Origin: Leucoraja erinacea
Taxonomy: Eukaryota
Assembly (NCBI RefSeq): GCF_028641065.1
Contig: NW_026576484.1
Location: forward strand, 1 to 64,000
Direction of reading: 5' to 3'
DNA: 64,000 nt
Below, piece after piece: positions 123 to 22,820 of this stretch. The notes beneath the pieces are model-generated. The model did not search any database. It saw nothing but the letters and a program-made list of their open reading frames with translations, and was not told the origin of the DNA. Positions within the stretch are counted from its first letter, which is position 1. Every line of letters begins with the position of its first letter. The position numbers and the translations under genes are program-made.

Positions 123-131
123 CACTTCCTT
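123..131 (-). promoter_or_regulatory. Ets/PU.1-type site (AAGGAAGTG) just upstream of the receptor ATG
   Basis: cacttcctt about 15 nt 5' of the ATG; motif match only. Confidence 0.3.
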
Positions 132-144
132 CACCAAAATCAAA

Positions 145-193
145 ATGTCATCGTTTGCAAAATTAATCTACACACTCTGCCTCTTTCTCCCAG
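145..193 (+). CDS. VJ-C1 IgSF receptor exon 1, signal peptide (MSSFAKLIYTLCLFLP/G)
   Basis: aaaATG at 145; hydrophobic 16-codon leader; consensus donor CAG|GTAAGT at 193/194; phase 1 joins in frame to the V exon. Confidence 0.88.
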
Positions 194-975
194 GTAAGTC
201 ATTCATGTTCACCCTTGCCAACCTCTGTTCACGTTGTCTTCCGATAACTTGTTTCTTTCTATGCCTTTTGCAATAATGTTTGTTGCTTTTTTGCCGTCTT
301 TTAGAAATTTCATGTGTAATTTATGTTCAATTTGTTTTTGAATATGTGTTTGTTTCAGTGTAAGTGTATGTGATGCTGTTGCAAGCAAGATTTTCATTTA
401 GACACAAAAGCAGAAATTGAACATGTAGTTAAAATAAGTTTGTCAGAAAGTTAACTTTAATTTAAGACTAAATTTAAGCGAAGGGTTCCGACCCGAAATG
501 TCACCCGTCATTTTTCTCCAGAGATGCTGCGTGACCCGCTGAGTTACTCCAGCACCTTGTGTCTATCTTAAATATAAGTGACACAAGGAACTGTAGATTA
601 ATGTAAGTTTACATGAGGACGTTAACGTAAATAAATGTAAGAGACACAAGAAGTGCAGATGCTGGAATCTTGAACAAAACACAGTACTGGAGTAACTCAG
701 CGGGTCAGGCAGCATCTCTGGAGAACATGGACAGAAGGCGTTTCGCGTCACGACCTTTCTTCGGATATGTTCTCCAGAGATGCTACTAGCGTCTCCAGCA
801 CTTCGTGCCTGGCTTCGATATAGATCAGCATCTGCAGTTCCTTCCTACACAAGTGGTTACAGGTGAGAGGGGGGGGGGGGTTTAATTGGGCCTGGACCTC
901 ACTGTCCTTGTGCCCATGATAGTAAACTCGAGTTACTCGGAAGACGTTGTTAACTATGTTCACTTTCCGTGCCAG

Positions 976-1311
976 GGTCCGCTGTCGGTGTGAGGGTGAA
1001 CCAGTCTCCTGCTGCTCTGACACGTCTCCGAGGACAGACAGCTACGTTCACCTGCTCCCTGCTACCTGGAGAGGGGGAGATAGTTTCAATGAGGGAATTC
1101 TGGTTTCGGACGAAAGACAACCCGGAGCTCAGGGACAACAAGACCAAGAGTTTTCTGAAGACAGGCGACCGACTGTCCGTGTCTGTGGGCTCGCTGGTCA
1201 TTCGGGAGGTGACTGTGCACGATGCAGACACTTACCATTGTGTGGTACTGATTGGTGATACATTGCCCTGGAAAACGTTTACAGGAAACGGAACCACATT
1301 ACATATCCAAG
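976..1311 (+). CDS. VJ-C1 IgSF receptor exon 2, V-set domain with germline J-like motif (NKp30/SIRP-like)
   Basis: Acceptor ttccgtgccag|, donor CAAG|GTAATT; V-frame motifs V-x-Q-S-P, G-x-T-A-T-F-T-C, FWFR, DADTYHC and G-strand FTGNGTTLHIQ, all in one exon. Confidence 0.95.
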
Positions 1312-1989
1312 GTAATTAATATAATAATAAACAGGAACAGGCCCTTCAGCCCACAATGTTCGTGCGGCCCATGAGGCCAAGTTAAACAAACATGTGTCTA
1401 TCCAAAAGTCTCTTAAACTCTACGATCGAATCTGCCTCCACAGCCACCCCGAGATCTGATGCGATGGAGTTGGTGAATCACACGAATCCCAAGTTCCCCA
1501 ACCCGAAACGCCGCCTGTCCATTCTCTCCACAGATGCGGCCTTAACCGCTGAGTTCCTCCAGCATTTTGTGTTTTGCTTAAGACTGCAGCGCCTGCAGTT
1601 CCATGTCTCTACTTCTATTTCATTCCTGCATTTCATCTCTCTCTATTAATGCTCATTTTCCGGCACAAACCAGCCCAGTCTGACAAAAGGTCCCGAACTT
1701 AAACGTCATATATCCATGATTTCCAGAGATGCTGCCTGACCCGCTGAGTTACTCCAGCGCTTTGAGTCTATCTTTGGTAAAAATAAACCTCGCATCTACA
1801 GTTCCTCCCGTCTCCCTAACGATACTAAATAGATAATGAAAACACCATCAACCGAGGTCGCAGTGTTTATATTCCCAACATGTCTAGTGTTGGCATTTAA
1901 TTCTCTTGATTTCCTTACACGGAGGGAGTGTGGAAACAAAAGCATCTTTGTTTCTCTCAGTTTTCTCTAGATTCCCTCTTGACATGACC

Positions 1990-2633
1990 CTGAAGTCGTC
2001 AAGTTGGGAAAAGGGGAAGTACAACGGGATCTGGGGGCCCTTGTACATCAGTCTATGAAAGTAAGCATGCGGGTACAGCAGGCAGTGAAGAAAGCGATTG
2101 TTGGCCTTTATAACAAGAGGAATCGAATATAGGAGCTGCTGCAGTTGTACAGAGTCCTAGTGAGACCACACCTGGAGTATTGTGTGCAGTTTTGGTCCTC
2201 TAATTTGAGGAAGGACATTCTTGCTATTGAGGGAGTGCAGCGTAGGTTTACGAGGTTAAATCCCGGATGGCGGGGCTGTCGTATGCTGAGAGAATGGAGC
2301 AGCTGGGTTTGTACACTCTGGAGTTTAGAAGGATGAGAAGGCATCTCATTGAAACATATAAGATTGTTAAGGGCTTGGACACGCTAGAGGCAAGAAACAT
2401 GTTCCCGATATCGGGGGAATCCAGAACTAAGGGCCACAGTTTAAGAATAAGGAGTAAGGCATTTAGAACGGAGACGAAGAAACACTTTTTCTCACAGAGA
2501 GTGGTGAGTCTGTGGAATTCTCTGCCTCAGAGGGAGGTGGAGGCAGGTTCTCTGGATGCTTTCAAGTAGGAGCTAGATAGGGCTCTTAAAAATAGCGGAG
2601 TCATGGGATATGGGGAGAAGGCAGGAACGGGGA
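1990..2633 (+). mobile_element. CR1 LINE 3' fragment
   Basis: [38 protein letters not shown]. Confidence 0.9.
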
Positions 2634-4005
2634 ACTCGGCGGTTAAGGCAGCATTCGTGGAGGTTTGGTGTTGGGGAACTTGGGATGTGTGTGAGGTCCC
2701 CACCCCACTGTATCAGCGGACAGTGGGAATGGTCGCACACATCCCTAACGCTTCATTGAAGGGAGGCAGCTACAATGCAAACGTGCGGCCGCTCTCCCAT
2801 CGCCCACGGGCTGGCGAGAGGGAGCCCGACCCGACCAGACTCTGCTAAATAATTCTGGCAACGTGAATCCATCTTCTGACCAATCTCGGCCCGGAAAGTA
2901 CCAGATGTAACACAAAATGCTGGAGCTACTCATCGGGTCGGCCCGTATCTGTGTGCGTGTGTGTGTGTGGGGTGGGGGGGGGGGGGGGGGAATAATTTAC
3001 CGATTCACATTGAAGGCTTCCAGCCGAAACCTTCGCCCTGAGACACAAGGAACCGGAGGGGCTGGTTAAAACAAAGACGCAAAGTGTTGGAGTAACTCAT
3101 CGAGTCAGGCAGCATCTCTGGAGAACATGGACCGTCATTCTCTTCCCACGAATCAGGCCTGTCCGGCTGAATATTTATATGTTCTGTTTTAGATGTCCAT
3201 CATCTGCTTGGATTTAGTTTACCGTCTACATATTCACTTCCATTTCATGCATTAAAATGCACAAAGTGCTGAAGGAACTCGGCGGGTCCGGCAGCATCTG
3301 TGGAATGAATGGACAGGCGGCGATTCAGACCGAAGAATGGTCCCGACCCGAAACACCGCCTGTCCATTTCGCCCGCTGATTCACTGTGATTATGGCTGAT
3401 CATCCACAGTCAGTATCCCCTTCTCCCCATATCCATGGACTCCGCTATCTTTAAGAGCTCTATAACTCTCGCTTGAAAGCATCCAGAGAATGCCTCCACT
3501 GCCTTCTGAGGCAGAGAATTCCGCAGATTCACAACTCTCTGGGAGAAATGTTTTTCCTCATCTCCATTCTAAATGGCTTACTCATTATTCTTAAAAATTC
3601 CAGCATCTCCAATTCCTTGTGTCTCCACGTCCATTTCATTCGCTTCCTGTATTTTTCTCTCTTATTGTGCATTTTGAGACACAGACTGAAGAGATGTAGT
3701 CTGTAGATGTAACCCGACCCGAAACATCGCATATCATCCATGAAGAGTTACTCCAGCACTTTGTGTCTCGTCAGCTGTTCATGTTCTCCACAGATGCCGC
3801 CTGACCCTCTGAGTTACTCCAGTACTTGTGCCTTTCTTTGGTATAAACCAGCGTTTGCAGCTCCTCTTTATTCCGCTAATAATCCATTGAATTACTTGGT
3901 TGCTCCTTAAGCAGGTGCACGGCGTGCCGTGTTATCATAGTTGCTTCATGCATGACTGAGAGCGACAGGAAGATTCACACCGTGTTATTTTCCTACTTTA
4001 CGCAG

Positions 4006-4305
4006 CGAAGCCTGATATCTCGCTGACCCTGGATGCCGGGGTAAAAGGCGCAGAGACGCGGAGCCTGACTTGTGTGGCCGCCGGATTCTTCCCGAGGGAG
4101 CTGAACATGTCCTGGGCTGTCGTGGGCCAGTTGTCCTATGAAACAGAAGCGGGGCCGCTGAGGGAGAATGAGGATGGAAGCTTCAACGTGAGCTCCCGGC
4201 TGCGGCTCACCGGCCCTCGGCTAGAGGCGGGCATGGTCGTCACCTGCCTGGTTCAGCACCTCACGGGGACGGGCTCGGTGAGCAAACGTTTCCCTCCCAT
4301 CCCAA
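4006..4305 (+). CDS. VJ-C1 IgSF receptor exon 3, C1-set domain
   Basis: Acceptor tttacgcag|, donor CCAA|GTAAGT; phase 1-1, 300 nt; AKPDISL...LTCVAAGFFPRELNMSW...NEDGSFNVSSRL...VTCLVQH matches C1 hallmarks (CxxxGFxP, W, NxDGxF, CxVxH). Confidence 0.95.
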
Positions 4306-4679
4306 GTAAGTGGCTTGAATGAACGTGGCAGTCAGCGTCCTCCAATTACTGAAGATACACAGAGTGCTGGAGTAACTCAGCGGCTCAGTTACTGCCGAGT
4401 TACTCCAACATTTTGTGTCTATCTGCGCCGTAAACTAACATCTGCAGGTCCTTCCTACACATGTCCAAGGTTGCAAGGTTTAATAGTACATGTGTACACA
4501 TTTGTTAAACGTAGCCACAATGAACTGCAGATTCTAGATTACAAAAAAGACACAAAGTGTTGAAGTAACTCAGCAGCGTCTAGTAGCATCTCTGGAGAAC
4601 GTTGAACGCAATTGATAAACCTGATCAAAAGTGTATAAGATCACTCAATGTGTACAATATCAACTGCAAATATGTATTT

Positions 4680-5045
4680 AGACTTTAGAGATACGCGGCA
4701 AAAGGCATTTCGGCCCATCAGCGATCACCTCATACACTGGCTAGACAAACACACGCTGGAGGAACTCAGCGGGTGAGGCCGCATCTATGTAGAGAAAGAT
4801 ATGCGACGTTTCGGGTCGAGACCTTTCTTCTTAAACACATCATACACTAACACTATCCTGCACATTGGGGACAATTTACAATTTTACCGAAGCCAATTAA
4901 CCTACAAACTCGTACGTCTTTGGAGTGTGGGAGGAAACCGGAGCACCCGGAAAAAAACCCACACAGGTCACGGGAAGAACGTACAGACTCCGCACATCCA
5001 ACACCCGTAGTCAGGATTGAACCCGCGTCTACTGCGCTGTAACAG
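4680..5045 (-). mobile_element. HE1-type tRNA-derived SINE with a Penelope-derived insert
   Basis: Reverse complement of the SINE core (ccgggtgctccggtttcctcccacactccaaagacgtac) shared with 25381-25660. Confidence 0.75.
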
Positions 5046-5241
5046 CAACTCAAGTACAGTTCATCTGTGCATCGATAAATATATATATACATATTTGAGT
5101 TGCTGCCATATATATTATATATATGTATGTTTATGCATCGATGATATCAGCACAATATATATATATATATCTTTCTTCATTATTATTTGAAACATTTACC
5201 GTTACAATACGGCGTAAGTGCTTTATCATATCAATATATTA

Positions 5242-5605
5242 ACCATATAACCATATAACAATTACAGCACGGAAACAGGCCATCTCGGCCCTACAAGTCC
5301 GTGCCGAACAACTTTTTATCCTTAGTCCCACCTGCCTGCACTCATACCATAACCCTCCATTCCCTTCTCATCCATATGCCTATCCAATTTATTTTTAAAT
5401 GATACCAACAAACCTGCCTCCACCACTTCCACTGGGAGCTCATTCCACACCGCTACCACTCTCTGAGTAAAGAAGTTCCCCCTCATGTTACCCCTAAACT
5501 TCTGTCCCTTAATTCTGAAGTCATGTCCTCTTGTTTGAATCTTCCCTATTCTCAAAAGGAAAAGCTGATCCACATCAACTGTCTATCCCTCTCATCATTT
5601 TAAAA
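5242..5605 (-). mobile_element. CR1 3' end with (ATATGGTT)n tail
   Basis: TRGHDFRIKGQKFRGNMRGNFFTQRVVAVWNELP; tail repeat aaccatat. Confidence 0.9.
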
Positions 5606-7129
5606 TGATGACATTATTATGTACATCTTGTACCCTGTATTTTAACGGTAAATGTCTCAAATAATAATGGAAGTTGAAGAAAGATGTATAAAATTGATAC
5701 TCGAGAAACTGCAGATGCTGGAATCTTGAGCTGGAGGAACTCAGCATCTGTGGAGGGAATGGACATGAGTCGTTTCGGGTCGGAACCCTTCAGCCCACAG
5801 ATGCTGTCTGACCCACTGAGTTCCACCAGCACTTTGTGTTTTGCTCAAGATTCCAGCATCTGCGGTTCCTTGTGCCTGCAAATTTCATATTGTTTAATTA
5901 ATTTAATTTATTCTGCGTTCATCGACGCACAGATGGGATCTCGACAAAAAGGGTTTAGGTGAATATATAAACTATAAACAAATGCAGCGGGTCAAGCAGC
6001 ATCTGTGGAGGGAATGAACAGACGACGTTTCAGACTGACGAAGGTTCCCGATCCAAACATCGTCTGTCCATTCCCTCCACAGATGCTGCCTGACCCGCTG
6101 AGTAGCTCCAACACGTTCTGTTTTGCTCAAGATTCCAGCATCTGCCCTTCCTTGTATCTCCATAAACTATACACAATACTTAATTATTTCCACTTCAATT
6201 TCGCTCCTGGTGCCCCACCGGTTATAGTGTTGCTGTTAAATCAACTTGGTTTCTTTACAAGGACCGTGGAATATGGTGGAACAGTGGGAAAATTGCTGGA
6301 GTAACTCAGCGGGTCAGGCAGCATCTCTAGAGAACATGGATAGGTGATGTGTCGGGTCAGGACCCTTCTTCAGACTGAATATTATGAAATATTGTAATGT
6401 ATACGACTCCTATGAAGGCAGCGTTGTGATGTTGCTGAATTTTTGAATTATACAAAGACAGATAGGAATGTTGATTGTGAATAGAATATATGAACAAGAA
6501 AATAGATGTGAAGTCTAGCATAATGTGGGGGGGGAAAAGGCAAAATTGTATATTTTGATGAGAAAACAAAAGCTTTTTGCTGTATCTCAGTCCATGTAAC
6601 AATAAACTAAACTAAACTAAATTAAAACAAAAAAGTTAAAAATATTGACACAGGTTTTGACCTGAATCGTTGAATCTGATTTTCTCTTCACAAATGCTCA
6701 TGATCTTATGAGCATTTAATTTTTTTATTGAGGGTGGTGTGAGCTGGATCATGCTGCCAGGGGTGGTGGGGGAGGCAGATGCGATTTGTGGTGTTGGAGG
6801 TTAGAGGTTTTGATAGGCACATGGATTTGCAGGGAATGGAGGGATGTGGATGATATGCAAACAGAGATTAGTTTAACTTGGCATCATGTTCTTCATAGAC
6901 ATTGTGGGCTGAAGGACCTGATCCTGTATTGTTATATGTTCTACTTTAGAGTAGTTTACTTGTTTTCATTGGTCTATCTTTGGTATAAACCAGCATCTGC
7001 ATTTCGTTCCTACATTCTCTATCTATCTATCTGTCTGAAAAAGGGTTGCGACCCGAAACGTCACCTACAGTATTTCTTTTCTTTAGAGATGCTGACTGAA
7101 CCGCTGAGTTACTACAGCAATTTGTGTCT

Positions 7130-10100
7130 ATCTTCCACTATTGCCACTTTTCCCCCAGGAATATCACCCTGGAAAAAATTCCCCTGCAACCACAAGAGAT
7201 GCAACACCTGTCCCTATACCATCTCCCTCGACTCCGTCCCGGGATCCCGGTAGTCCTTTCAGGTTAGGCAGAGGTTCACTTGCATCTCCTCCAACCTCAC
7301 CTACTGTATCCGTTGTTCAAGATGTGGACTCTTATGAACTGATGTTCTGACCTACCTCATAGCACATCATATTATATTATATTGTCTCCTGGGCCTGTGC
7401 AATTTACAATGCAATCGACACTTTTTATATAGGGTTTGTGTAATTTACAATGCTCTCACTTTTCCCTTTATATAGGGTTTTAGGCATTTTCTTTCTTTTT
7501 TAGTTCTAGAGAAGTATATGTTTTTATAGATTATGTGTCTTCTGTGTGTCTTTTTAACTTGACGTGACCTGACTCTCTGAACAACCGCGCAAGAGTTCCT
7601 ATGTGTGTAAGCACAAATGGCAAATACAATTTTTGACCTTTGACCTTGACCTTTATATATCGGCAAGACCAAATGTAGACTGGGCAATCATTTCGCTGAA
7701 AACCTTCTCTCAGTCCGCCTGGCCCTACCTGATCTCCCAGTTGCTAAACACATTTAATTCTCCTTCTCATTCCCGCTCTAACCTTTCTGTTCTAGGCCTC
7801 CTCCATAATCAAAGTGAGGTTAAATGGAAATTGGAGTAATGGCCCTATTTATTTTCGGTGATGGAAACATTTCAACTGGGTGAGACGTTTTGCACATGGG
7901 TTAAGCTTTTATACACTAACCCAACAGCTAGCATAATGACAAATCAAATGTTATCAACAAAATTATATTTATCTAAAGGTTTCAGACAAGGATGCCCGTT
8001 ATCTCCATTATTATTTGCCCTTGCTATTGAACCACTAGCAGAAAGTGTTCGAACACATCCAGAAATATATGGGTATAATACTAAAAATACAGTTAATAAA
8101 ATCTCTCTATATGCAGACGATGTATTACTATATATTACAAACCCACAAATCAGCATTCCAAACTTGTTAAATCTTATAACTCAATTTGTTTTATTTTTGG
8201 GATATAGAATTAATTGGAATAGTGCTTAAAAGTTACACTTAAAAGTGAGATTATGCCAAGTTATACATATTGCAACAATCACCTTTCAGAATAGTCAAGG
8301 AAAAATGTAAATACCTAGGAATTTATGCGACCATGAAATATACTTCTTTATTTAAATCAAATTTCATGCCTTTACTTAATAAATTGCATAAGAATATTCA
8401 ATATTGGAAAACACTTCTCATTTCAATGCTCGGTGGATTTAACGCTATAAAAATGATTTTCCTTCTGCAATTGCTATACCTTTTACAATCAATTCCTATA
8501 AATCTCCCAAAATATTTATTTTAAAAAGTTGACTCCACAGTGACAAGTTTTATTTGGAATTATAAGAACCATAGAATAAGCAAAAAACACTTATGCAAAT
8601 CCAAGACCAAAGGAGGATTAGTTTTACCAATTTTTTTATTTTACTTTTGGGCAGTCAATGTCAAAAATATGAATTTTTGGTTGGACGATATGGATCAACA
8701 ACCAGACTGGTTAAAGATGGAAAAGGAAGACTGTTTGCCTTTTGAAATTGGTCCGATTCTGTTAGCTCCCACAAAATTGAATTTAAAAATCTATAGTGAA
8801 AACCCTATAATATATAGTGGTATTCGAATTTGGAAACAACTAAAAAAGTCATTAAAATTGGATAATTTATCACTTTCTCTCCCCATTGCAAATAAACCTT
8901 TATTTAAACCCTCAGTGTTGGATAAAGGGTTTGTACAATGGAAAAATCATGGAATTAAAAAGATGGGACATGTTTATAGAAATTGTATTTTTCTCGCGTT
9001 TCAGGAGTTACAACAGAATTACGGATTACATTCAAATAATTTTTTTAGATATTTACAACTTAAAGATTATGTTAAATCGCATACACGAGAACACAGAACC
9101 AGAGAGCCAGAGATTTGAGATGAATGTTTGAATAAACACCCTAACACAGTCAAATTAATATCTCACATTTATAATACTTTTATAGACAGTGAGAATCCGT
9201 CGCCGGAATTATACAGAGAAGCATGGGAAAAGGAATTAGCTCAACCTATAACGAAAGATATTTGGGACAAAAGCCTACAACATATACACCAATGTTCGTT
9301 AAATGCCAAACATTCTTTAATTTAATTTAAAGCACTACATAGACTGCATTATTCTAAAACAAAATTAAATATAATGTTTCCTAATATCTCTCCTCTCTGT
9401 GATAAATTTCAATCCCACGTGGCTAATTCAACCCATGCTTTTGTAATCTGTAGTAAAATTAAAAATTACTGGATGGATATTTTTTAAATAATCTCTGTAG
9501 TTGTCAATATCCAAATCGATCCCGATCCTAAATTAATAATATTGGGCATATCAGAACAATACCTAAACCTCAGAATAAACCAAAGAGATTTCCTTCATTA
9601 CAGTATAATAATTGGGAAAAAATTGATATTAAAATTTTGGAAAAACCCAACAACCCCCACAATCAAGATGTGGATTATGGAGATGTCGGAGACCTTACAT
9701 TTGGAAAAAATTAGATTTGTCTTAATTCACAAACCAGAATTATTTACTAGAATATGGTCTCCATTTATAGATTATTTGAAGGGGTAAATTGGACCGGCGT
9801 GGAGGCCGGACTGAAGCCTGAACCCAGGACTAGATGAATAGTTATGTTCTCTGGCCCCAAGTTGTATTATTGATAGTTTATCCTATTTTTCTAATTTCCT
9901 TCTTTCTTTCTTTATTTTTCCTATCTATAAATATAAATAAATAATTAAAGGCAATGTTAATGTGTAACCGATAAAGGAGGATCCCAGCTACATTGGTAAC
10001 TGGCTCCCTGGAAACCTGGATAGTTAATATGTAACCATTAAACAAAGTCTGTACTGGTTTGGATTATGATATGCAGATGCCTCTAATAAAAATGTATTTA

Positions 10101-10200
10101 AAAAAAAAGGAAATTGGAGGAACAACATCTCATATTACGCTTGGGCAGCTTACAACCCAGGGGTATGAATATTGAGTTGTCTAACTTCAAGTAACCCTTG
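7130..10200 (+). mobile_element. Penelope-like element GIY-YIG fragment, interrupted by two insertions
   Basis: CNHKRCNTCPY, QRFTCISSNLTYCIRC, YIGKTKCRLG and, after the L1, KLEEQHLILRLGSLQPRGMNIE. Confidence 0.8.
7837..10108 (+). mobile_element. 5'-truncated L1/Tx1-type LINE (degenerate ORF2, RT to C-terminus)
   Basis: GFRQGCPLSPLLFALAIEPLA, ISLYADD, KYLGI; AATAAA and A-tail; 11-bp TSD ggaaattggag at 7826-7836 and 10109-10119. Confidence 0.92.
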
Positions 10201-10845
10201 AATTCCCTCTCTCTCTCCATCCCTCCCCATCCAAGTCACAACAGCTTTTTGTTCTCACCTAGCTACAGCTAACAATGACCTGTTTCCTTTATCTCTTGAC
10301 ATCATTGCCGGTATCTCTTGTTTCCCTTTCCCTTAACTTTCAGTCTGAAGAAGTATTGACTCAAAACGTCACCCATTCCTTCTCTCCACAGATGCTGCCT
10401 GTCCCACTGAGTTACTTCAGCATTTTGTTTCTATCTTCGATTTGAACCAGTAGTTCCTTCCTATGAAATTCTGCTCCTCTCTATCGTCTAATTTGCTCCC
10501 TGTTCTCACGATCGGTCCTTGACCTGTTTCTTTAACTTTGTTTCCCTTTACACATTTTTAGATTAGATTAGATTAGATCCTTTATTTGTCATTCAGAACG
10601 AAATGTCATTGCCTGCAGCCATACATGTAATAATAAACAACAAAACACACAATAAACACAAATTAACATCCACCACAGTGAGTTCACCAGGCACTTCCTC
10701 ACTGTGATGGAGGCAAAAATCTTAGGGTTACTGTCTCTTCCCTCCTCTTCTCCCTCTGCGCTGAGGCGATATGCTGTTACCCCACCGGGCGATGGTAAGT
10801 CAGTCCCGCGGCTCACCGAGCTCCGCGAACGGGACGGTTCACGCT

Positions 10846-11705: not shown

Positions 11706-13084
11706 ACCGGAGGGCGGCCCGGGGTGGTCGAAGCTGCCGCCCTCCAGTCCAGCGGATGCAGTTGTTGCCATGGGAGCTCCGGAAAACAGGCACTGCCTGT
11801 GACCTGCGAATTCCCGACGATTTCGTCCACTGGCCCGCGGCCGAGCCCCAGATTCAGGTCGCCGCCGCCAGAACGCCGCCTCAGCTATCGGAGCGCCGTC
11901 CCAGCCCTGCGCCGGGCCGCCCTCACTGGAGCGCCATCTCAGCCCCGAGCGTCGAGTTGTGCCGCTGCCACCGGAGCATCTCAGCCCCGCGCCGGGTCGC
12001 CCTCATGGGAGCGTCGAGTCACTGGAGCGCCCGAACGCGGCCACAGCTCGAAGACGGCCAGCCTAGCTCCGGAGCCTCGAGGTCGGTCGCAGGTTGGAGG
12101 CCGCCAGCTCCGCCATTAGGCCTCAGCGCAGACGGAGGCAGAGAAGGGGGATATGACAAGAAAAAGTCGCATTCCCCCGAAGGGAGAGACAGAAAGCCCT
12201 GTTTTAGGCCCCCCCCACCCCACACACATAACACAACCTAATAACCAAAAATGTAACTAAACAAGACAAAAAAAAACAACACAAAAAAGTAAAAACAGAT
12301 GGACTGCAGGAGAGCCGTTCAACAGCGCCGCCACTTCCGGAGCCTGACCTGCTGCATATTTCCACCATTTTCTTTCTTTTCGTTAATTTTTTTTTTTAAA
12401 CCTTCTTGTTGTAGATTGGTTACTTTACTTACTAACCAATGTAGTGCTTTATTATTATATGGCAGGAGACAGCATTTATCCTCTGTGACTTGGGAGATCT
12501 TGGTTTCATAGTAAATGATTTACTGAAGCCAGTAAGCAGATATAGCAAATCAATGTGAATGCTATATAGTGGAAATGTCAAGGACTAGAGGACATAGCTT
12601 CAAGGTGAGAGAGGCAAAGTTTAAAGGAGATGTACGGGACAAGTTGTTTTAAACAGAGGGTGGTGAGTGCCTGGAACATGTTGCTAGTAGTGGTGGTGGA
12701 GGCTGATATGATAGTGGCATTTAAGAGGTGTTTAGATAGGCATGTGGATGTGCAGGGAATGGAGGGATATGATTCACGTGCAGGCAGAGAAGATTGGTTT
12801 AACTTGGCTCCATGTTTGTCACAGACATTGCAAATTGAAGGGCCTGTACTATGTTCTAAACTCTATGAGGTTGGCAGATTCCGTACACAACACATTCCAA
12901 GACAGACCACTACATAAAGGATTCACTGTTGATTTTGCATAATGATTTTTCCTTGTTGTTTGGTTTATAAGGGGCAAAGTTTAACAAAGATGTGCACGCT
13001 GCCAGGGGTGGTAGTGGAGGCAGATATGATAGTGGTGTTTAAGAGGCTTTTAGGAAGCAGTTACGCAGCTGATTTTCCAATATA

Positions 13085-13561
13085 CCTGGGGTGTCCTGGG
13101 ATGTCAGGACTTTCATATGAAGAAAGACTGGATAGACTCGGATTGTACTCGCTAGAATTTAGGAAATTGAAGGCGGATCTTATAGAAACTTACAAAATTC
13201 TTAAGGGATTGGACAGGCTAGATGCAGGAAGATTGTTCCTGATGTTGGGGAAGTCCAGAACAAGGGATCACAGTTTAAGGATAAGGGGAACTCGTTTAGG
13301 ACCGAGATGAGAAAAACATTTTTCACACAGAGAGTGTTGAATCTCTGGAATTCTCTGCCACAGAAGGTAGTTGAGGCCAGTTCATTGGCTATATTTAAGA
13401 GGGAGTTAGATGTGGCCCTTGTGGCTAAAGGGATCGGGGGTATGGAGAGAAGTCAGGTACAGGATACTGAGTTGGATGATCAGCCATGATCATATTGAAT
13501 GGCGGTGCAGGCTCGAAGGCCAAATGGCCTACTCCTGCACCTATTTTCTATGTTTCTATGT
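13085..13561 (+). mobile_element. CR1 3' end with (TTTCTATG)n tail
   Basis: GMSGLSYEERLDRLGLYSLEFR, FFTQRVLNLWNSLP. Confidence 0.9.
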
Positions 13562-14751
13562 AAACGCTAGTGGTTTGTGAAATGTTTCACTTCTCATAAA
13601 CAGCTCGGTAATTCACAACACCTATTGAGTCCACACCCAAGATTAGAAGTTGTTCAGCCACAGCCATACAATGATGTCTGTCTTGCGCTTGTTGTGCTTC
13701 TTGTGCGTGATGGTGGGAGATTGGTGGAAACAGGGCCGCGATGTGAACGCTCTTTCCTTGACCCCATTTACAACACGTTATATTGCGGTCATTTACAACA
13801 CAAGGATCCAATCTTTACCCCAGTAACAGTAAACTTAGTGAATAGTAAGAATGTTAATCTATGAATAGAATAATGTTGGTTTTCACCTCTGAAAGGCCTG
13901 TCTCATTTCTTTAAGTATAGATATTTGTAGAACTAGAATATTAAGTGATAATCAAGGAGTATCTATAGTTACATTGACTTCTCTAACTTCAAGTAGCCCT
14001 TGCTTTCCCTCTCTCTCCATCTCCTCCCTCTTCCCAGTTCTCCTACCAGTCTTACTGTCTCTGACTACATTTTATCTCTGTACTGCCCACTTCCCTGACA
14101 TCAGTCTGAAGAAAAGTCCCAACCAGAAAAGTCACCCATTCCTTCTCTCCAGAGATGCTGTCTGTTCCGCTGAGTTACTCCAGCAGTTTGTGTTTGCCTT
14201 CGATTTAAACCACCATCTGCAGTTCTTTCCTACACATATCTATATTAACAGACATATTGGTAATATTTACCATGGAATTCCTGCAGAAAAAAATCTATTG
14301 ACATATTTCACAAGAGCAATATATCGGAAATATTAGATTTTAATATATTTCTGTTTCAATTGTCTGTGCGGAGATTGCATGTTTTAGCTGTGACCGTGTG
14401 GGTTTCCTCCTCCGGGTGCTCCGGTTTCCTCGCACGTCCAAAAGACATAAAGGTTTGTAGTTCAATTGGTCCCTGCACATTGTCTCTAGTGTGTAGAGAG
14501 TGGATGTGAAAGGGTGATAACATAGAACTGGTGTAAACGGATGATCGATAGTCAGCGTGGACTCTGCGGGTTGAAGCACCAGGTTCTATCTGTGCCTCTA
14601 AACAACATTAAACTAAACGACATACATGATTAATGTTTCATGTAACAGTGCATTTAAATGATTTAATGTAATGTAACATGCAATAGTCATGATTATATTT
14701 GCTATTCATTGTAGCATTATTTTGATTCATATTTCAATTGTGATTTTCAAG

Positions 14752-14853
14752 GATCCTCCAAGTATTATTTCATTCGACTGAGTCTGATCCTAATAGTACC
14801 AATATGGGTCTTGATTGTGTATCATTATCACAATAAATTGAAGAAAGGAAAAG
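14752..14853 (+). CDS. VJ-C1 IgSF receptor exon 4, transmembrane segment with Arg (RSSKYYFIRLSLILIVPIWVLIVYHYHNKLKKGK)
   Basis: Acceptor attttcaag|, donor AAG|GTAATG; phase 1-1, open in the C1 frame; hydrophobic helix followed by a basic stop-transfer cluster; lies in non-repetitive sequence. Confidence 0.85.
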
Positions 14854-14961
14854 GTAATGTATACATTGTACATTTTATTTTGTAATTTAACTAAAAACTG
14901 AGTATATAAAAGTGAATATTGTCTTTAGTTCCCAGAGAGATTAAAATAATTTAAACAAAAT

Positions 14962-15445
14962 GAGGGTGACAGCTTGTAGAGCTGCTGCCTCACAGTGCTA
15001 GAGATCCGGGTTAGAAACATAGAAACATAGACAATAGGTGCAGGAGTGGGCCATTCAGCCCTTCGAGCCAGCACCACCATTAAATGTGATCATGACTGAT
15101 CATCTAAAATCAGTACCCCGTTCTTGCTTTTTCACCATATCCCTTGATTCCTTTAGCCCTAAGAAATAAATCTAACTCTCTCTTGAATCCTGACTACGGG
15201 TGCTGACTTTGTGTAGAGTTTGCATGTTCTCCCTGTGACCACTTGGATTTCCTCAGAGTGCTTTGTTTTTCTCCCACATCCCAAAGATGTGTGGGTTTGT
15301 AGGTTAATTGACCGTGTGTAAATTGCCTCTAGTGTGCAGGGAGTGGATGTGAAAATGGGATAATGTAGAACTAGTCCGAACAGGTGATCGATGGTCGGCG
15401 TAGACGCGGTGGGCTGAATGGCCTGTTTCTGTCCTGTATCTCTGA
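14962..15445 (+). mobile_element. HE1-type SINE with a nested minus-strand CR1 3' end (15013-15186)
   Basis: tRNA-like head gctgctgcctcacagtgctagagatccgggtt, central core, CR1-like tail. Confidence 0.75.
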
Positions 15446-15476
15446 AATACACTAAATATTCATGATATTTTTATAG

Positions 15477-15544
15477 AATCATCTGTCCATGACACAACTG
15501 TTGATATTCAAAGCATGAGAAACCGAAATAACTCAGTAAATGAG
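15477..15544 (+). CDS. VJ-C1 IgSF receptor exon 5, cytoplasmic (ESSVHDTTVDIQSMRNRNNSVNE)
   Basis: Acceptor tttttatag|, consensus donor GAG|GTGAGT; phase 1-0; open frame. Confidence 0.78.
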
Positions 15545-15659
15545 GTGAGTAATTTAGTTTGATATTTACCCTTATGTTGCATGCACGATGTTCTAATGTA
15601 CACTGCGGTATTGTCAGCTTATATGAACAAATTCGTCAGCACTATTGGATGTAATGGAC

Positions 15660-16545
15660 TTTGTAGTTTTGCAGATAGTGAAGATGATTGTGAAATATTG
15701 TAGCAGGATTGGCCAGGTGGGCAGAGGAATGGTTGATGGAATTTAATACAGAGATGTGTGAGATGTTGTATTTTGGGACATTGAACAAAGGCCTACACAG
15801 TAAATGGTAGGCCTCTGGGTAATATTGTAGAGTAGAGGCATCTACCTGGGACTCGACCATGGTTCGTTGAAGGTCTAGTCGCAGGTAAATAAGGTGGTCG
15901 AAAAGGCTTTTGGCACTTTGGCCTTCATCAGTCAAAGTATTGAGTATCAAAGCTAAGAGGTCATGTTGTAGTTGTATAAGACGTTGGTGAGACGGCATTT
16001 AGAATATTGTGTTCAGTTTTGGGCACTATGTTAGAGGAAAGATATTGTCAAGCTTGAAAGGTTTCAGAAAATATTTACGAGGATGTTGTCAGGACTAGAG
16101 GGTGTGAGCTATAGGTAGAGATTGAGTAGGCTGGGTCTCTATTCCATGGAGCACAGGAGGATGATGGGAGATCTTATAGAGGTATACATAATCATGAGAG
16201 GAATAGATCGGGCAGATGCACAGAGGCTCTTGCCCAAAGTAGGGGAATCGAGGACCAGAGGACATAGGTTCAAGGTGAAGGGGAAAAGATTTAATAGGAA
16301 TCCGAGGGGTATCTTTTACACACAAAGGATGGTGGATGTATGGAACAAGCTGCCAGGTTAGGTAGTTGATTCTATCCCATCCTTTAAGAAACAGTTTGAC
16401 AGGTAAATGGATAGGGCGGGTTTGGAGGGTTATGGACCAAGCGCAGGCAAGTGGGACTAGTGTAGCTGGGACATTGTTGGCCGGTGTGGGCGAGTTGGGC
16501 CAAAGGGCCTGTTTCCACACTGTATCTCTCTCTATGTCTCTATAA
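15660..16545 (+). mobile_element. Degenerate CR1 3' region
   Basis: RLGLYSMEHRRMMGDLIEVY, SRTRGHRFKVKG, WNKLP. Confidence 0.85.
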
Positions 16546-16622
16546 CACAAGACATTCTGCGGCACGGTGGCGCAGTGGGAGTGTTGCTGCCTCATAGCTG
16601 AGTCGCACGTTACGAGTTAACA

Positions 16623-17528
16623 CAAGAGTCAAGAGTCAAGAGTCAAGAGTCAATTTAATTGTCATTTGGACCCCTGGGGGTCCAAACGAAATGCCGTTTC
16701 TGCAGCCATACATTACACACAAATAGACCCCAGACAAAACATAATTACATTTAACATAAACATCCATCACATAACTGTGATGGAAGGCCAAAAACACTTA
16801 TCTCTCCACTGCACTCTCCCCCCCCCGATGTCACAGTCAAAGTCAAAGCCCCCGGCTGGCGATGGCGATTGTCCCGCGGCCATTAAAGCCACGCCGGGTG
16901 GTGCGAGGTCGCACACCGGGTCTTGGTGTTGGAGCCCCCGGTGTGCGCTCGCAAAGTCCCGCAGCCGTTCCAGCCGCGCGGGGCAATGGTGTTAGGCCCC
17001 GCTCCAGGAGCTCTTCGACCCCGCAACACGGGCGGGAGAATTCGCCGTTGCAGCAGCCCGAAAAGCGGTCTCCCTCCAGGGAGCCGCGCGGGGTCGTCCG
17101 AGCCATCCGCAGACCCGCAGTAGCAGCCTCCGACTCAGCAGCAGCAGCGGCATCGGCAGCAGCAGCAGCAGCAGCAGCAGCGGCAGCGGCAGCGCTCCTC
17201 CACCGCTCCACCCGCTCCGGTCTCGGCCAGCTCCGCGACGGCAACGGTGAGTCGGCACCAGAGTCCCCGGCTTCTTCCCGTTGGAGGCCGCTCCTCGTTG
17301 CGGCCTCAACGACACCTGAGACCCGACGAGAAAAGGTCGGGTCTCCAGTGCAGGGAGAGATTCAAAAGTTCCCCCCCCCCCCCCCCACCCCACCCCCCAC
17401 CCCCACCCCCCCACACACACACCCCAACATAAAATAACAAACACTACACAGAAACACAGACAAAAAATAACAAAAACGCGGACAGGCTGCAGAGGCCGCT
17501 GCTGGCCAGAGCCGCGCCGCCTACCGGA
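16623..17528 (-). mobile_element. Non-autonomous GC-rich retroelement, copy 2
   Basis: Colinear with 10846-11705; (caagagt)n tail. Confidence 0.8.
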
Positions 17529-17850
17529 ACCCCGAGGTACCCCGAGTTAAAACTCGTGGTAATAACGTACGATTAACGTACCAAACTCGTAGACGTAACT
17601 TAGAGACTCGTGGCGCTAACGGCAGGTACTCGAGAAACTTGTCAACTCTTGCAAAAAATCAAACATGTTTAAAATTTTCCACGAGTCAATTTTACCCTTG
17701 TGGTTAAGAATTGAAACATTTAAACTTGTAAGAACATAGTGGCCCGTGCGTTTACCTTAGTGTATCATGAGTCTACCGTGGGAACGCTTTAACTCAGCGA
17801 GCAGGCAGCAGCAGATTGTCGCTCCCTTCAGTTTCCCAGCGACAATCACC

Positions 17851-18886
17851 TGCCATAACGCGAGAAAGATCATGCACTGTTGTAGGTCTCCTTTGCACGT
17901 CGGTGTTTCTGTCTTTCTCCACTCATTGGTGGCCCTATCTGTCACCACCCCCAGCTTCCCGGCCATGTGTGTGACCCCTTCCCTCCCCTCTCCAGCTCCC
18001 CGCCCATTGCACCAGCGTGGGGGCTTTGCACTGTCTTCACGTCGGCGATGCCAGCAGGTCAGTGCCAGTCGCCCCGGGGCAGTTGCTCCCTTCAGTTTCC
18101 CAGGGGGTCGAGATAGGACTGGAATTGGGAGGGAAAGGTGGGGGGGGTGGGGGGGTTAGGTGAGCAGGAGAGTGGAGTTGTTTGCAGTTGCAGAGTAAGG
18201 GGGCAAGGGCGGTACAGTTCCCAGTCTCAGCTCCTGCCCAGGGGGGTGGCCGGAGACGTCAGGACCAACGAGACACCGACCCCCAGGCCCACGAGGCCCA
18301 CTGCAAGCACGGAGAACCCAGAGACCCATAGCCAACAGCAACTCCAGCCCAGTCCCGCTCCAACTCCAATGGAACCCGCTCCCCGTAGGGTCAGAAGCTG
18401 ATGGTATGCAAGGTACGTGTGAGGGGGCACCCGTGGGCGAACTGGGTCAGAAGCCCATCTGATGGTATGCAAGGTACGTCTTGTTCTTGGGGTGGCGGCC
18501 ACTCTCCTGGTCCTGACGTCTCAGGCCACCACCCTGGGGAGGAGCTGAGACGGAACTGTACTGCCCTTGCCCCCCCCCCACCATTCCCTCCCAACTCCAG
18601 TCCCGTCCCGACCCCCTGGGAAACTGAAGGGAGCGACTGCCCCGGGGCGACTAGCAGTGACCTGCTGGCATCGCCGACGTGAAGACAGTTCAAATCCCCC
18701 TCGCCAGTGCAATGGGCGGGGAGCTGGAGAGAGGAGGTAAAGGGTCACACACATGGCCGGGAAGCAGAGGGATGTAGGTGGGGGTGGTGACAGATAGGGC
18801 CAACAATGAGTGGAGAAAGACAGAAACACCGACGTGCAAAGGAGACCTACAACAAACAGTGCATGATCTCTCTCGCGTTATGGCAG
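17851..18886. repeat. About 1-kb imperfect inverted repeat (foldback)
   Basis: 17851-18235 is the reverse complement of about 18500-18886. Confidence 0.8.
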
Positions 18887-20104
18887 CTGTTCCTGAAGCT
18901 AAAGCCTTGGGATCGTTGCCCTTCGTGTTGGTTTGGACAGGGAGAGGGGGTATTGTGCTGTTTGATCGCCCCCTGCTATCCCAGGGACAAAGAGACACAG
19001 CGGCTTTTGAGACTGGTGGGCAATCACGTCTAAAGTGTCTGCCCACACAGTCAGTACACCTCTCCTACACTTGTCTCCACCTCTCCTACACCTGCCTCCA
19101 CCACTTCCACTGAAGCTCATTCCACACCGCTACCACTCTCTGAGTAAAGAAGTTCCCCCTCATGTTACCCCTAAACCTCTGTCCCTTAATTCGTGGGTTT
19201 TCTCCGGGTGCTCCCGTTTCCTCTCATTCTTCAAATTGGATTCTGTAAAAACTATCACTAGTGTGTAGGATAGTGCTAGTGCAGGGGTTAATCGCTGTTC
19301 GGCACGGGGACTCGGTGGGCCGAAGGGCCTGTTTCCGCACTGTTTCTCTAAAGTCCAGTGCATCTGCAGTTCCTTGTGTCAGCAAACCCGAATTGTCGCT
19401 GTCCTTTTTCAATCGAGAGAATTTTTCAATGCATTTAACTTGTTTGCCGTTTGCTTCCATCAGCTGGAATTATACTGCCAACAAAGTGAGATCCATATTC
19501 CAAAACACACTCCCTCTTCAAGGAGGCCTTGTGATCAACTGCATACCAGTCATTGGGCATTGCTGTGTAATGAGTTTCGTTGTTGAAGAAGTGATGTTGC
19601 TACTAATATGCGTTGGATTCCATTCTCTTCAACTAAATCTACTATGCGTAAAATGACCTCAAGTGCCTGGTTTACTCATTATTGTGAATGCAGGGTATTT
19701 TACCCAGGATAGGAAAATCTGGCTGCGTTATTCAAGCACTTTGGGGCTTTTTCCAAGCCACCATCTGCAGTTCCTTGCGTATTTATTAAAGAAGTTCGGT
19801 TCTGTTACTTTTTTGCGTAAGAAAGAACTTCAGATGCTGGTAAAAATCAAAGGTTTTGATCAGTCTGAAGAAGGATCTCGACCCCAAAACGTCGCCCATT
19901 CCTTCTCTCTAGAGATGCTGCCTCACCGGCTGAGTTGCTCCTGCATTCTGTGTCTATCTTCTGTTACTTTTTTATTCTTCTACTCTGTGAAGACTTTAAG
20001 CCTGGAGTATAATTCCAGGGTCTCATTGTCCTCAATGTTATTTCTCACTTCTTCAAGTGTATATCCTAGCGTTGATGAAATGACATATCTTGACCAAGTC
20101 TGAT

Positions 20105-20410
20105 TAGACTTTAGAGATACAGCGTGGAAACAGGACATTTGGCCCATCGAGTCCGCACCGACCAGCAATCACCTCTTACACTAGCGCGATCCTACTCACT
20201 GGGGACATTTTACACATTTACCAAAGCCAATTAACCTACAAACCTGTATGTATTTGGAGTGTGGGAGGAAACTGGAGCATCTGGAGGTCCCACGCGATCA
20301 AGGGGAGAACATATAAACTTTGTACAGACAGCACGTGTAGTCAGTCGGGATTAAAACCAGGTCTCTGCCGCTGTGAGGCAGCTACTCTGCCGCTGCGCCA
20401 ATGTGCCCCC
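20105..20410 (-). mobile_element. HE1-type SINE
   Basis: Head, core and tail all recognisable in reverse complement. Confidence 0.8.
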
Positions 20411-20965
20411 TAATCATGCACCTTTTTGCACATAACATTAGTTGCACTCCTCAGACTGACTTTCACCTCCGTATCATTTTACACACACAAAACCTGATAG
20501 CGCGCGACAAACAAAACAGCTGTTAATCTTGTCCTTTTAGAGATGGTCAGATACAGGTCACAATGGCAGATTATAGCAGGCATAGATATTCCCTACACAC
20601 TGGGGGCAATTTACATAAGACCACAAACCCGCACTTCTTTGTGACATGGGGGGAAATTAGAGCATGGATGAATTAATTAACTCTGCCCGATATCTTTCCC
20701 TGGATGTGCAGCAGCTGAAAGTGATGGGGGTGGGTTTTCTCCTTAAACAGCTCAGTGAGTGGTCAGATGAATTTTTGCAGTTGGAGGTCACTTCAGTAAA
20801 ATATGAAGTGCCAGCGCAAAGTTCTCTGATTCTAGCAATATTCCACCGTCATATCACACTGTCCCCTGCCAACAACAATCCCATCAATACCTCCCTGCCT
20901 GAGATCATTTGTTGCCGGCCCTGATTTGTCCCAGTCTTTGCTTACTTTCAGTCCCCCCCCCCAGT

Positions 20966-20993
20966 CTGAAGAAGAGTCCCAATCTGAAACGTC
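20966..20993 (+). ncRNA. Minimal hammerhead-ribozyme motif in a Penelope-derived short element (best-preserved copy)
   Basis: CTGAAGA-AGA gtcccaa TCT-GAAA-CG-TC; catalytic core nucleotides intact. Confidence 0.5.
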
Positions 20994-21224
20994 ACCTGTC
21001 CACCACATAGACGTTGTCTGTCTCGTTGAGTTTGTGTCTATCTGATTCTAGCAAGCTTTGTTGTTGGGAAAACTGAATACAATGGACTGGCCATTGTTAA
21101 GATCAGAAAATGACCCAAAGACTCAACTGCCAGGCAGTATCTCTGCTGAATATGGATAGATATGTTTCCTCGACGGTGAAACTGATGAGAAGGTTGGTTG
21201 ACCCTGTTAAGGGACAAGAGTGTT

Positions 21225-21670
21225 ATCATTTGTTGTCATATACACTGACAACAGAACAATAACATTCTTATTTGCAGCAGCATAACAAGCCTGTAAACAC
21301 AAGGCATACAAAGAATATATAGCAAACAAAAATGCAATCCATTAATAACTCCAATACCATTGCAAAAACCCACAAAGTGTGTAGTGCAACTAAAGACAGT
21401 TTAGTTGATGTTGTGCAGTGTTCAAGAGCCTGATGGTTGGTGGAAAGAAGCTGTTCCTGAACCTGGACATTGCTGTTCACACATTCCTCTGTACCTTCTT
21501 CCTGATAGCAGGAATGAAATGAAAGCGTGGCCAGAGTGCTGTGGGTCTCTGATGATATTGGTTGACTTTTAGAGGCAGCGCCTCCTGCAGATCCCTTTGA
21601 TGTTGGGGAGGTCTGTTCCTGTGATGGACTAGGCAGTGTCCACCACTCTTTGTAACCTGCTTCATTCCCG
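21225..21670 (-). mobile_element. Rex1/Babar LINE 3' fragment
   Basis: Degenerate HSLFSLLPSGRRYR-type C-terminal sequence and tgacaacaaa 3' end. Confidence 0.65.
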
Positions 21671-22784
21671 GGTGATGTTGATAATGATATCAGTGAAACA
21701 GATATTGCCCACAAGTGTCACATGCCCATCGATCACTGACTAGTCCATGGACACACACACACCCACACTTTAGCTTTTGCCCATTTGGTGTTTACTAATC
21801 AAATTCGTTACTGATTTCACATGACTTTTCAATAAAAATCAGGAACAGAGCCTCATTATAATTTATAAATTATAAATTATAAATCAGGAACAGAATACCT
21901 CATTAGATTCAGCTAAAAATAAAATGACCATAAGATCATCAGACATAGTAGCAGAATTAGGTCATTCAGCCCATCGAGTCTGCTCTGACATTCACTCATG
22001 GCTGATCTAATTTTCCCTCTCAACCAATACTCCTGCCTTCTCACCGTAATCTTTGACACCCGTACTAATCAAGAATCTATCATTCTCCGCTTTAAAATGA
22101 TCCAATGTCTTGGCCTCTACCACTGACTGCGCTAATAAATTCCACAGATTCACCACCATCTGGCTAAATAAATCCTCTCATCTCCGTTCTATTGTTATCC
22201 AAAATGTTCTAAAGTTCTAAAATTCCTCCGCTTCTCCAATTCTAAAATGAAGAAAATATCTTTCTAACCATAAGTTGGAATGTCTACAGAGACGATTTAC
22301 GATGATGTTGACAGGACTTCAGGGAGAGGTTGAGCAGGCTTGGACTCCCTGGAGCACAGGAGGATAAGGGGCGATCTTATTGGGGTGTATAAAATCATAA
22401 TGGGAATAGGTGGGTGAATGCACTGAGTTATTATAGCCAAAGGGAATTGAGAAATAGAAGGCATATGTTTAATGTGAGAGGGAAAAACTTGAGGGGCAAC
22501 TTTATCACTCAGAGGGTGGTGGGTATATGGAACGAGCCGCCGGAGGACGTAGTTGGGGCAGGGACTACAACACCATTTAAAAGATATTTGGACAGGTACA
22601 TGGACACAAAAGGTTTAGAGGGACTAGTGCCAACCGAGGGCAAATGGGACTATCTTAGATGGGGCATCTTGGTCGGCGTAGACGAGTTGGGCCGATGGGT
22701 CTGTTTCCGTGCTCTATAACTATGATATCAACTCTATAACACTAATATTTGCAAGTGGTTCTTATTGTTATTTTTGTGTTGCAG

Positions 22785-22820
22785 GATAATGTTTCAATAA
22801 ACTATGAAAATCTGCATTAG
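22785..22820 (+). CDS. VJ-C1 IgSF receptor terminal exon (DNVSINYENLH*), ITIM INYENL
   Basis: Strong acceptor tttttgtgttgcag|; phase 0 matches exon 5; I-x-Y-x-x-L motif; TAG at 22818-22820. Confidence 0.78.
   Translation, partial: DNVSINYENLH

Follow-up and report, generated by a model that had tools for sequence, protein, structure and literature searches.

RESULTS

A six-exon gene for a VJ-C1 receptor

The first 64,000 nucleotides of contig NW_026576484.1 of the little skate, Leucoraja erinacea (assembly GCF_028641065.1), here called the window, carry on the plus strand a gene for an immunoglobulin (Ig)-type receptor. Its parts are a leader, an unsplit variable domain with its own joining-like strand (VJ), one constant domain of the C1 set, a transmembrane (TM) helix, and a short cytoplasmic tail. 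Its six exons were read directly and checked by script. Exon 1 (145-193) carries the start codon, encodes most of the signal peptide (MSSFAKLIYTLCLFLP plus 1 nt), and ends at a phase-1 donor, and exon 2 (976-1311) encodes the end of the leader and the whole VJ-type V-set domain, with FTGNGTTLHIQ at 1278-1310 and the donor GT at 1312. Exon 3 (4006-4305) encodes the C1-set constant domain, with LTCVAAGFFPRELNMSW and, later, VTCLVQH. Exon 4 (14752-14853) supplies the stalk, the TM helix YYFIRLSLILIVPIWVLIVYHY, in which an arginine is encoded by CGA at 14775-14777, and the basic stop-transfer sequence NKLKKGK. Exon 5 (15477-15544), the first cytoplasmic exon, encodes SSVHDTTVDIQSMRNRNNSVNE and ends at a phase-0 donor. 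The coding part of exon 6 (22785-22820) encodes DNVSINYENLH, with INYENL at 22797-22814, and closes with the stop codon TAG at 22818-22820.

All internal borders have the form AG-exon-GT by script, the acceptors are pyrimidine-rich, and the donors are, in order, GTAAGT, GTAATT, GTAAGT, GTAATG, and GTGAGT. Exon lengths of 49, 336, 300, 102, 68, and 36 nt give intron phases of 1, 1, 1, 1, and 0. The codons (16+1+111+1+99+1+33+1+22+11) sum to 296, and those split at the junctions are GGG (Gly), GCG (Ala, which opens the A-K-P of the second domain), AGA (Arg), and GAA (Glu). The exon translations were searched or folded one exon at a time, never as a joined protein. Each aligns separately and in the same order to full-length elasmobranch proteins, with E values from 1e-43 for the V exon to about 1e-3 for the leader exon. 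Because all six align in order to these relatives, the exon model is complete, with no Ig exon missing between the C1 and TM exons. An earlier note on this DNA, made from the letters alone, had proposed the same six GT-AG exons and phases; its coordinates are exact, and its reading as leader, VJ, C1, TM, and tail is borne out by the domain scores and by the collinear relatives. That note had also named additional Ig exons as evidence against its reading and suggested a look for tandem paralogues; no further Ig exon or paralogue was found in the 64-kb window.

The V and C1 domains

Exon 2 is a Pfam V-set domain (31.5 bits against a cutoff of 26, E of 2.1e-7), and exon 3 is a C1-set domain (49.4 bits against a cutoff of 21, E of 5.8e-13), scoring only 20.1 bits as C2-set_2. 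The V exon runs from its YHC motif into FTGNGTTLHIQ, so that the J-like G.GT.L strand lies within the V exon itself with the splice donor directly after it; the Phe of this strand stands two residues ahead of the first Gly, not one. Three sequons (NQS, NKT, and NGT) lie in exon 2, out of five in the whole ectodomain. No exact heptamer of a recombination signal sequence (RSS) was found at 800-1500, and a heptamer-spacer-nonamer scan of 1-5000 returned a single weak match (6/7 plus 6/9) on the minus strand, inside the exon and at background frequency. In 2009, Hatherley et al. listed three hallmarks of C1 domains (PMC2785349): an (F/Y)(F/Y/H)P opening the BC loop, a spacing of exactly 13 residues from the B-strand Cys to the C-strand Trp, and x-V-x-H following the Cys of the F strand. 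Exon 3 has all three: in C-VAAGFFPRELNMS-W, 13 residues separate the Cys from the Trp and include FFP, and VTC-LVQH is present. The earlier note's assignment to the class of non-rearranging VJ-C1 receptors holds, with its J-like motif as quoted and its second domain starting at AKP.

AlphaFold models of exons 2 and 3 are confident, with predicted local distance difference test (pLDDT) scores of 85.9 and 81.7, respectively. The Foldseek neighbors of the V model are the V domain of shark IgNAR (VNAR), NKp30 at rank 2, T cell receptor (TCR) V-alpha, Ig light chain (IgL) V, and SIRP V, all with E values between 5e-8 and 4e-7. Among the matches listed for the C1 model, most are C1-set chains, namely, B7-H6, the constant domains of IgA, IgE, and IgG, the alpha-2 and beta-2 domains of major histocompatibility complex (MHC) class II, and beta-2-microglobulin. 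Compared with solved structures by sequence, the V exon is nearest to shark IgNAR V (1.6e-7) and then to NKp30 (5.5e-4), and the C1 exon is nearest to UrIg2 and also matches Ig constant domains and SIRP-alpha/gamma. Judged from its model, the skate V domain is antigen-receptor-like in a general way, and no one relative stands closest to it. The mosaic of NKp30-like and SIRP-like parts seen in the earlier note finds no support here, as the V domain is about equally near IgNAR V, NKp30, TCR V-alpha, IgL V, and SIRP V.

A family shared by sharks, rays, and amphibians

A phmmer search with the V exon against 1.84 billion representative proteins placed a 290-aa sawfish protein at the top (1.5e-32, 66% identity), followed by stingray, catshark, and electric-ray proteins. 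Cluster look-ups and word-index searches of protein databases extended the family to at least 13 shark and ray species, listed as 13 elasmobranch genera, with Pristis, Mobula, Hypanus, Hemitrygon, Narcine, Heptranchias, Heterodontus, Hemiscyllium, Stegostoma, Scyliorhinus, Mustelus, and Cetorhinus named; one unnamed UniParc entry may be a chimaera member. Two amphibian proteins are collinear relatives, and the caecilian protein P0039 aligns with the catshark protein over 369 residues that include the TM helix and all four tail motifs (E of 5e-27). Identities between the skate gene and its relatives are 47 to 65% in the V domain (64.5% with the sawfish orthologue), 46 to 61% in the C1 domain, and 44 to 57% in the TM exon. 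Exon 1 is 50 to 62% identical over 16 aa to the N termini of Mobula, Hemitrygon, and Hypanus proteins, and exon 5 is 52 to 57% identical to the same segment in Heptranchias, Heterodontus, and Pristis proteins. The C1 exon is present in the skate gene and in all relatives. All family-invariant residues, 13 in V and 12 in C1, are kept in the skate. In a tree of V domains, the skate branch is long (0.54 versus a median of 0.12).

Database names for these proteins are automatic and inconsistent ("signal-regulatory protein beta-1-like," "SHPS-1-like," "immunoglobulin kappa light chain-like," and "T cell receptor beta chain-like"). None of the records found bears an author-given name, and no paper naming the family was found. 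From these comparisons, the gene is the little-skate member of a conserved VJ-C1-TM family labeled SIRP-like in RefSeq, and it is apparently unannotated. Sharks, rays, and amphibians have this family in common, so that the skate gene is no unique relic of the first antigen receptor.

Two proteins of Hypanus sabinus (P0002 and P0061) and one of Mobula birostris (P0063) have two tandem, near-identical C1 domains (V-C1-C1). This doubling in the stingray lineage looks like a recent, secondary duplication of the C1 exon. It has parallels in mammalian SIRPs, with their two C1 domains, and in UrIg2, for which duplications of C domains are reported.

A stop codon on the first tail tyrosine

The tails of shark and amphibian members carry four tyrosine motifs, L(H/Q)YASV, TEYA(V/A)L, V.Y(S/T)TV, and T.YASL, which fit the consensus of immunoreceptor tyrosine-based inhibitory and switch motifs (ITIM and ITSM). 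Ray tails carry only the first two. By tblastn, the skate TAG at 22818-22820 aligns with the tyrosine of L(H/Q)YA(S/P)V in every orthologue, NLH-stop-APV standing against TLHYAPV. Behind the stop, at 22821-22934 on the plus strand, lies an in-frame fossil of the tail, APVYCKEGQQRQELRWTEQSQETEYAVLKVKDNNSLFF, which is 51 to 65% identical to orthologue tails (blastp E of 4e-10) and has its ITSM-like TEYAVL intact at 22887-22904. The old last exon is then interrupted, on the same strand, by an insertion of about 200 bp (22935-23130, read directly), which starts T-rich and ends in AATAAA followed by a run of A. It lies between two similar short sequences (AAAGAT.A.AAT), and orthologue tails match on either side, so that it is probably a short retroposed element with its target-site duplication. 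The distal part of the tail fossil continues at 23131-23245 on the plus strand in a shifted frame, reading IIYEEPVTYSTVIHCPSST, a second stop (TAA, 23192-23194), and PQTDTYHTTTHSSLKQ; tblastn of orthologue tails covers 23117-23242 with E values from 6e-8 to 3e-3. Where shark relatives have the tyrosine of the last motif, this distal fossil has a histidine.

By this alignment, the 296-aa open reading frame (ORF) derives by truncation from an inhibitory receptor that was longer. The earlier note had counted its codons correctly and had missed that the frame is a remnant, stopped on the tyrosine of the first ITIM. Just before the stop, the skate has gained a tyrosine: orthologues have L-S-(N/S/D)-E-T-L where skate exon 6 has INYENL, an ITIM-like motif that also reads as YxN.

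An arginine in the TM helix and paired relatives

The TM helix has a mean Kyte-Doolittle hydropathy of 2.25 in 19-residue windows that include the arginine. The skate sequence here is F-I-R-L-S-L, and 12 of the 12 comparable relatives have leucine at the arginine position. This NKp30-like arginine is a substitution found only in the skate copy among these proteins.

Several rays have an arginine in the TM segment of a second gene. Partner genes in Pristis (P0060), Mobula hypostoma (P0069), and Hemitrygon akajei (P0071) have V and C1 domains near-identical to those of the long inhibitory form of the same lineage, joined to a different, arginine-containing TM segment (e.g., LIPVIVRHFIIVVG) and a short tail. 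In the V tree, each partner-gene V domain clusters with long forms from the lineage to which it belongs. A near-identical ectodomain with an arginine in the membrane and a short tail argues for a family of paired receptors, and this would be the pattern expected of inhibitory and activating partners kept alike by gene conversion or recent duplication. No alternative TM exon of the arginine type seen in the ray partner genes was found in the window.

RNA evidence

One polyA RNA-seq run and three contig runs were placed on positions 1-6000, and all of their depth falls on transposons, which is neither support for expression of the gene nor evidence of its silence. In the polyA run, from an unspecified tissue and read to about 6%, depth on exons 1 to 3 is zero. 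For the predicted splicing of the VJ exon to the C1 exon, the splice sites and the orthologous protein models agree, and the single, sparsely sampled RNA run has no reads on these exons.

RNA and contig runs of several differently labeled organisms pile up to very high depth on the repeats in introns 1 to 3 (401-900, 1600-2800, and 4800-5600). These repeats are abundant, transcribed interspersed repeats common to related species.

Kinship with characterized receptors and chromosomal position

Against solved structures, a profile of the family runs collinear with SIRP-alpha (2wng) over the V domain and the first C1 domain at 75.3 bits, with SGAGTELSVRAKPS opposite TGNGTeLNVQAKPe. The same profile scores an Ig kappa chain at 80.1 bits, above SIRP-alpha, and the best stretch of UrIg2 at 71.4 bits; UrIg2 tops the C1 and profile lists only through the sum of three C domains. 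The two nearest language-model neighbors of the catshark member are an "SHPS-1-like" cluster (0.97) and a "Signal regulatory protein alpha" cluster (0.96). As far as profiles and layout can tell, SIRP appears to be the closest characterized family in layout and in likely mode of action.

White-shark NCR3 genes, which encode NKp30, adjoin AIF1 on the MHC chromosome. The relatives of the skate gene lie on sequences of 211.7 Mb in the catshark and 120.5 Mb in the sawfish. Since these sizes do not fit the MHC chromosomes of the two species (catshark chr13, with its last listed gene at 163.4 Mb, and sawfish chr34), the relatives are presumably not MHC-linked in either, which undercuts the link to NKp30 drawn in the earlier note. 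Membership in the MHC-linked NCR3 cluster or in UrIg/UrIg2 was considered and rejected on domain number and chromosome size.

The remainder of the window

Beyond the gene, the window carries only transposon debris, and no further cellular gene was recognized in 23300-64000. The debris includes pieces of long interspersed nuclear elements (LINEs), with a GDSL-esterase ORF1 at 45027-45980, endonucleases at 43609-44937 and 38799-39677, and reverse transcriptases at 42043-43017 and 60802-62124, and a hAT dimerization fragment at 51434-51817. Proline-rich low-complexity stretches lie at about 53000-56200. Two runs of N fall near 48210-48470 and 57040-57210, with 380 N in the window as a whole.

DISCUSSION

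The skate gene described here belongs to a conserved VJ-C1-TM family. We consider it probable that this family was ancestrally inhibitory and SIRP-alpha-like and that the skate copy, having lost its tail and gained a TM arginine, has become an activating receptor or a decoy. The ancestral protein would have consisted of a signal peptide, one non-rearranging VJ-type V domain, one C1-set domain, a TM helix, and a tail with four tyrosine motifs of the ITIM/ITSM class, which would have recruited the phosphatases SHP-1 and SHP-2 and delivered an inhibitory signal. The skate copy probably descends from this inhibitory type. A nonsense codon now stands in place of the tyrosine of the first tail motif, with the rest of the tail left behind as a fossil broken by the retro-insertion and the second stop, and the outer third of the membrane helix has acquired an arginine. 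If expressed, the present-day protein would be a glycosylated type I receptor whose V domain may still bind the ligand of the family, and it would no longer give an SHP-mediated inhibitory signal. Its arginine could couple to an acidic adaptor with an immunoreceptor tyrosine-based activation motif (ITAM), of the FcR-gamma, CD3-zeta, or DAP12 type. Alternatively, the receptor may have ended as a signal-poor decoy, and the INYENL motif could retain some ITIM- or Grb2-type signaling. Taken together, a stop on the ITIM tyrosine and an arginine in the membrane fit an inhibitory receptor that is turning activating or signal-dead.

Several observations weigh against parts of this history. The exons covered by RNA data have zero depth, and no skate protein of the family was found in the protein databases searched; the gene may have escaped annotation, be expressed only weakly, or be a young pseudogene. 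The long skate branch in the V tree could reflect relaxed constraint. The TAG at 22818-22820 could be an allele or an assembly error. If INYENL still works as an ITIM, the switch would not be a purely activating one, and coupling of the arginine to an adaptor is an inference only. As to the ancestor, an Ig kappa chain scores above SIRP-alpha with the family profile, and mammalian SIRPs have two C1 domains where the family has one, so that orthology to SIRP is tentative.

Two alternatives concern the state of the skate copy. The long V branch together with the zero exon depth in RNA keeps a young pseudogene, or a silent and decaying gene whose V, C1, and TM exons are simply not yet disabled, a serious rival, although we regard it as unlikely. 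Its case is strengthened by the absence of the skate protein from the databases searched and by the three lesions (stop, retro-insertion, and second stop) in the last exon. Against it, none of the six exons has lost its open frame or its canonical splice sites, the residue gained in the TM helix is arginine, which is typical of activating partners, and the RNA test was weak. The retention of all 25 family-invariant V and C1 residues, with lesions confined to the region behind the stop codon, argues for continued constraint. It is also conceivable, but rather improbable, that the skate receptor is still inhibitory, with the new INYENL replacing the lost motifs and the TM arginine having no adaptor role. 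INYENL fits the ITIM consensus I/V/L/S-x-Y-x-x-L/V and lies four residues before the stop. However, a single membrane-distal motif five residues from the C terminus would be a weak docking site for SHP phosphatases, YxN is equally a Grb2-type motif, and burying an arginine in the outer third of the helix would cost energy unless an acidic partner paired with it.

The other two alternatives concern the origin of the gene. The earlier note saw in it a surviving precursor of antigen receptors from before RAG, with an NKp30-like V domain and TM segment and a SIRP-like C1 domain, nearer to the ancestor of Ig and TCR than the known non-rearranging genes. A single VJ joined to a single C1, the leader split in phase 1, and the lack of an RSS all suit such a precursor, as does the fact that the best solved relatives of its V exon are the rearranging shark IgNAR V and then NKp30, and that of its C1 exon is UrIg2. 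We nevertheless find this reading very improbable. The V domain is roughly equidistant from VNAR, NKp30, TCR, IgL, and SIRP, UrIg2 ranks first only by adding up its C domains, and the TM arginine is not ancestral in the family. The family is spread over 13 elasmobranch genera and amphibians, has the SIRP-alpha layout down to G.GTEL..(R/Q)AKP and an ITIM/ITSM tail, and behaves as paired innate receptors; its catshark and sawfish orthologues lie off the MHC chromosome. Better-placed candidates have been published, namely, UrIg, with linkage to the MHC, and UrIg2, with linkage to IgH/TCR-alpha-delta (PMC12227049). That the gene is a member of the shark and ray NCR3 multigene family that acquired a C1 exon seems highly unlikely. 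NKp30 does rank among the solved relatives by sequence and by fold, and the skate has a TM arginine. The J-like motif of human NKp30 resembles TGNGT.L as well. Yet the arginine is skate-specific, white-shark NCR3 sits beside AIF1 on the MHC chromosome while the catshark and sawfish sequences of this family are elsewhere, and a search with an orectolobiform family member gave no author-named NCR3 or NKp30 protein.

Returning to the reading we favor, of an ancestrally inhibitory family with a converted skate copy, a more far-reaching version can be put forward tentatively. The family may be the cartilaginous-fish and amphibian counterpart of SIRP, so that ancestral SIRP would have been an inhibitory receptor with a single VJ and a single C1 domain, the minimal layout of an antigen-receptor chain. 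SIRP-type receptors would then have originated at the base of the jawed vertebrates, and the skate copy would stand midway in a switch from inhibition to activation. If this orthology is true, the history of SIRP reaches the first jawed vertebrates and the two-C1 form of mammals is derived. True C1-set domains are rare outside Ig, TCR, and MHC, and genes that pair an unsplit VJ exon with a C1 exon are material for reasoning about the origin of antigen receptors. The family described here adds a set of such genes, conserved across sharks, rays, and amphibians and off the MHC chromosome in both species checked. A kinship between SIRP-type V-C1 receptors and the antigen-receptor precursor was already suggested in 2009, and stronger candidates, UrIg and UrIg2, have been published since. 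What the skate gene contributes is a clean sequence-level example of the loss of an ITIM tail together with the gain of a charged membrane residue.

The putative conversion has counterparts in other paired receptor families. In KIR, Ly49, LILR/PIR, and Siglec receptors, the ITIMs are lost through a premature stop and the TM helix gains a basic residue, while the ectodomain stays near that of the inhibitory form. The skate lesions would match this route. Those receptors have ectodomains of the C2/I-set or lectin type, whereas the ectodomain of the skate receptor consists of VJ and C1 domains.

Other non-rearranging VJ receptors resemble the family in part. NKp30 shares with it a single-exon VJ domain and the G.GNGT.L strand, and with the skate copy also a TM arginine and a short tail. 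However, NKp30 lacks a C1 domain and is linked to MHC class III beside AIF1, whereas the family has a C1 domain and, ancestrally, an ITIM tail without a TM charge. PRARP, which Fu et al. reportedly described in J Immunol in 2019, is said to comprise membrane proteins of bony fish through birds that have a non-rearranging VJ(-C1) ectodomain and an immunoregulatory motif in the cytoplasmic part. By that description it belongs to the same general class, and PRARP and the amphibian relatives found here are possibly the same family. PRARP is cited in PMC10751288, and an MBE paper lists it among MHC-linked VJ genes, whereas in two elasmobranchs the present family is off the MHC chromosome. Our protein database searches gave no sequence named PRARP. 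UrIg and UrIg2 (PDB 9dmx) are, like the family, elasmobranch receptors with a single-exon VJ, a split leader, and true C1 domains. They have several C1 domains, with nine in nurse-shark UrIg2, which forms disulfide-linked dimers (PMC12227049). The present family, in contrast, has one C1 domain, no stalk cysteine, and an ITIM/ITSM tail, and it does not lie on the MHC chromosome in the catshark or sawfish.

SIRP offers the closest comparison. The tail of human SIRP-alpha carries four tyrosine motifs in two pairs, including TEYASI, and the tail of the family is similar, with its four YA..(L/V/I)-type motifs in two pairs that include TEYA... Both are type I membrane proteins. In SIRP (2wng, 4i2x, and 2jju) as in the family, the N-terminal V domain carries a J-like G.GT.L strand and is followed directly by (R/Q)AKP and a C1-set domain. 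The paired forms of the family recall SIRP-beta in their charged TM residue and short tail, and the skate copy, with its truncated tail and TM arginine, resembles them. The correspondence has limits beyond the number of C1 domains, for by sequence the family V domain stands no nearer to SIRP V than to the V domains of Ig, TCR, or NKp30, and the charged residue is an arginine in the outer third of the helix in the skate versus a mid-helix lysine in SIRP-beta-1. SIRP was proposed in 2009 as a link to the evolution of antigen receptors (PMC2785349), and the family described here shares with it both the passage from a J-like strand into a C1 domain and the pairing of long inhibitory forms with short, charged ones.

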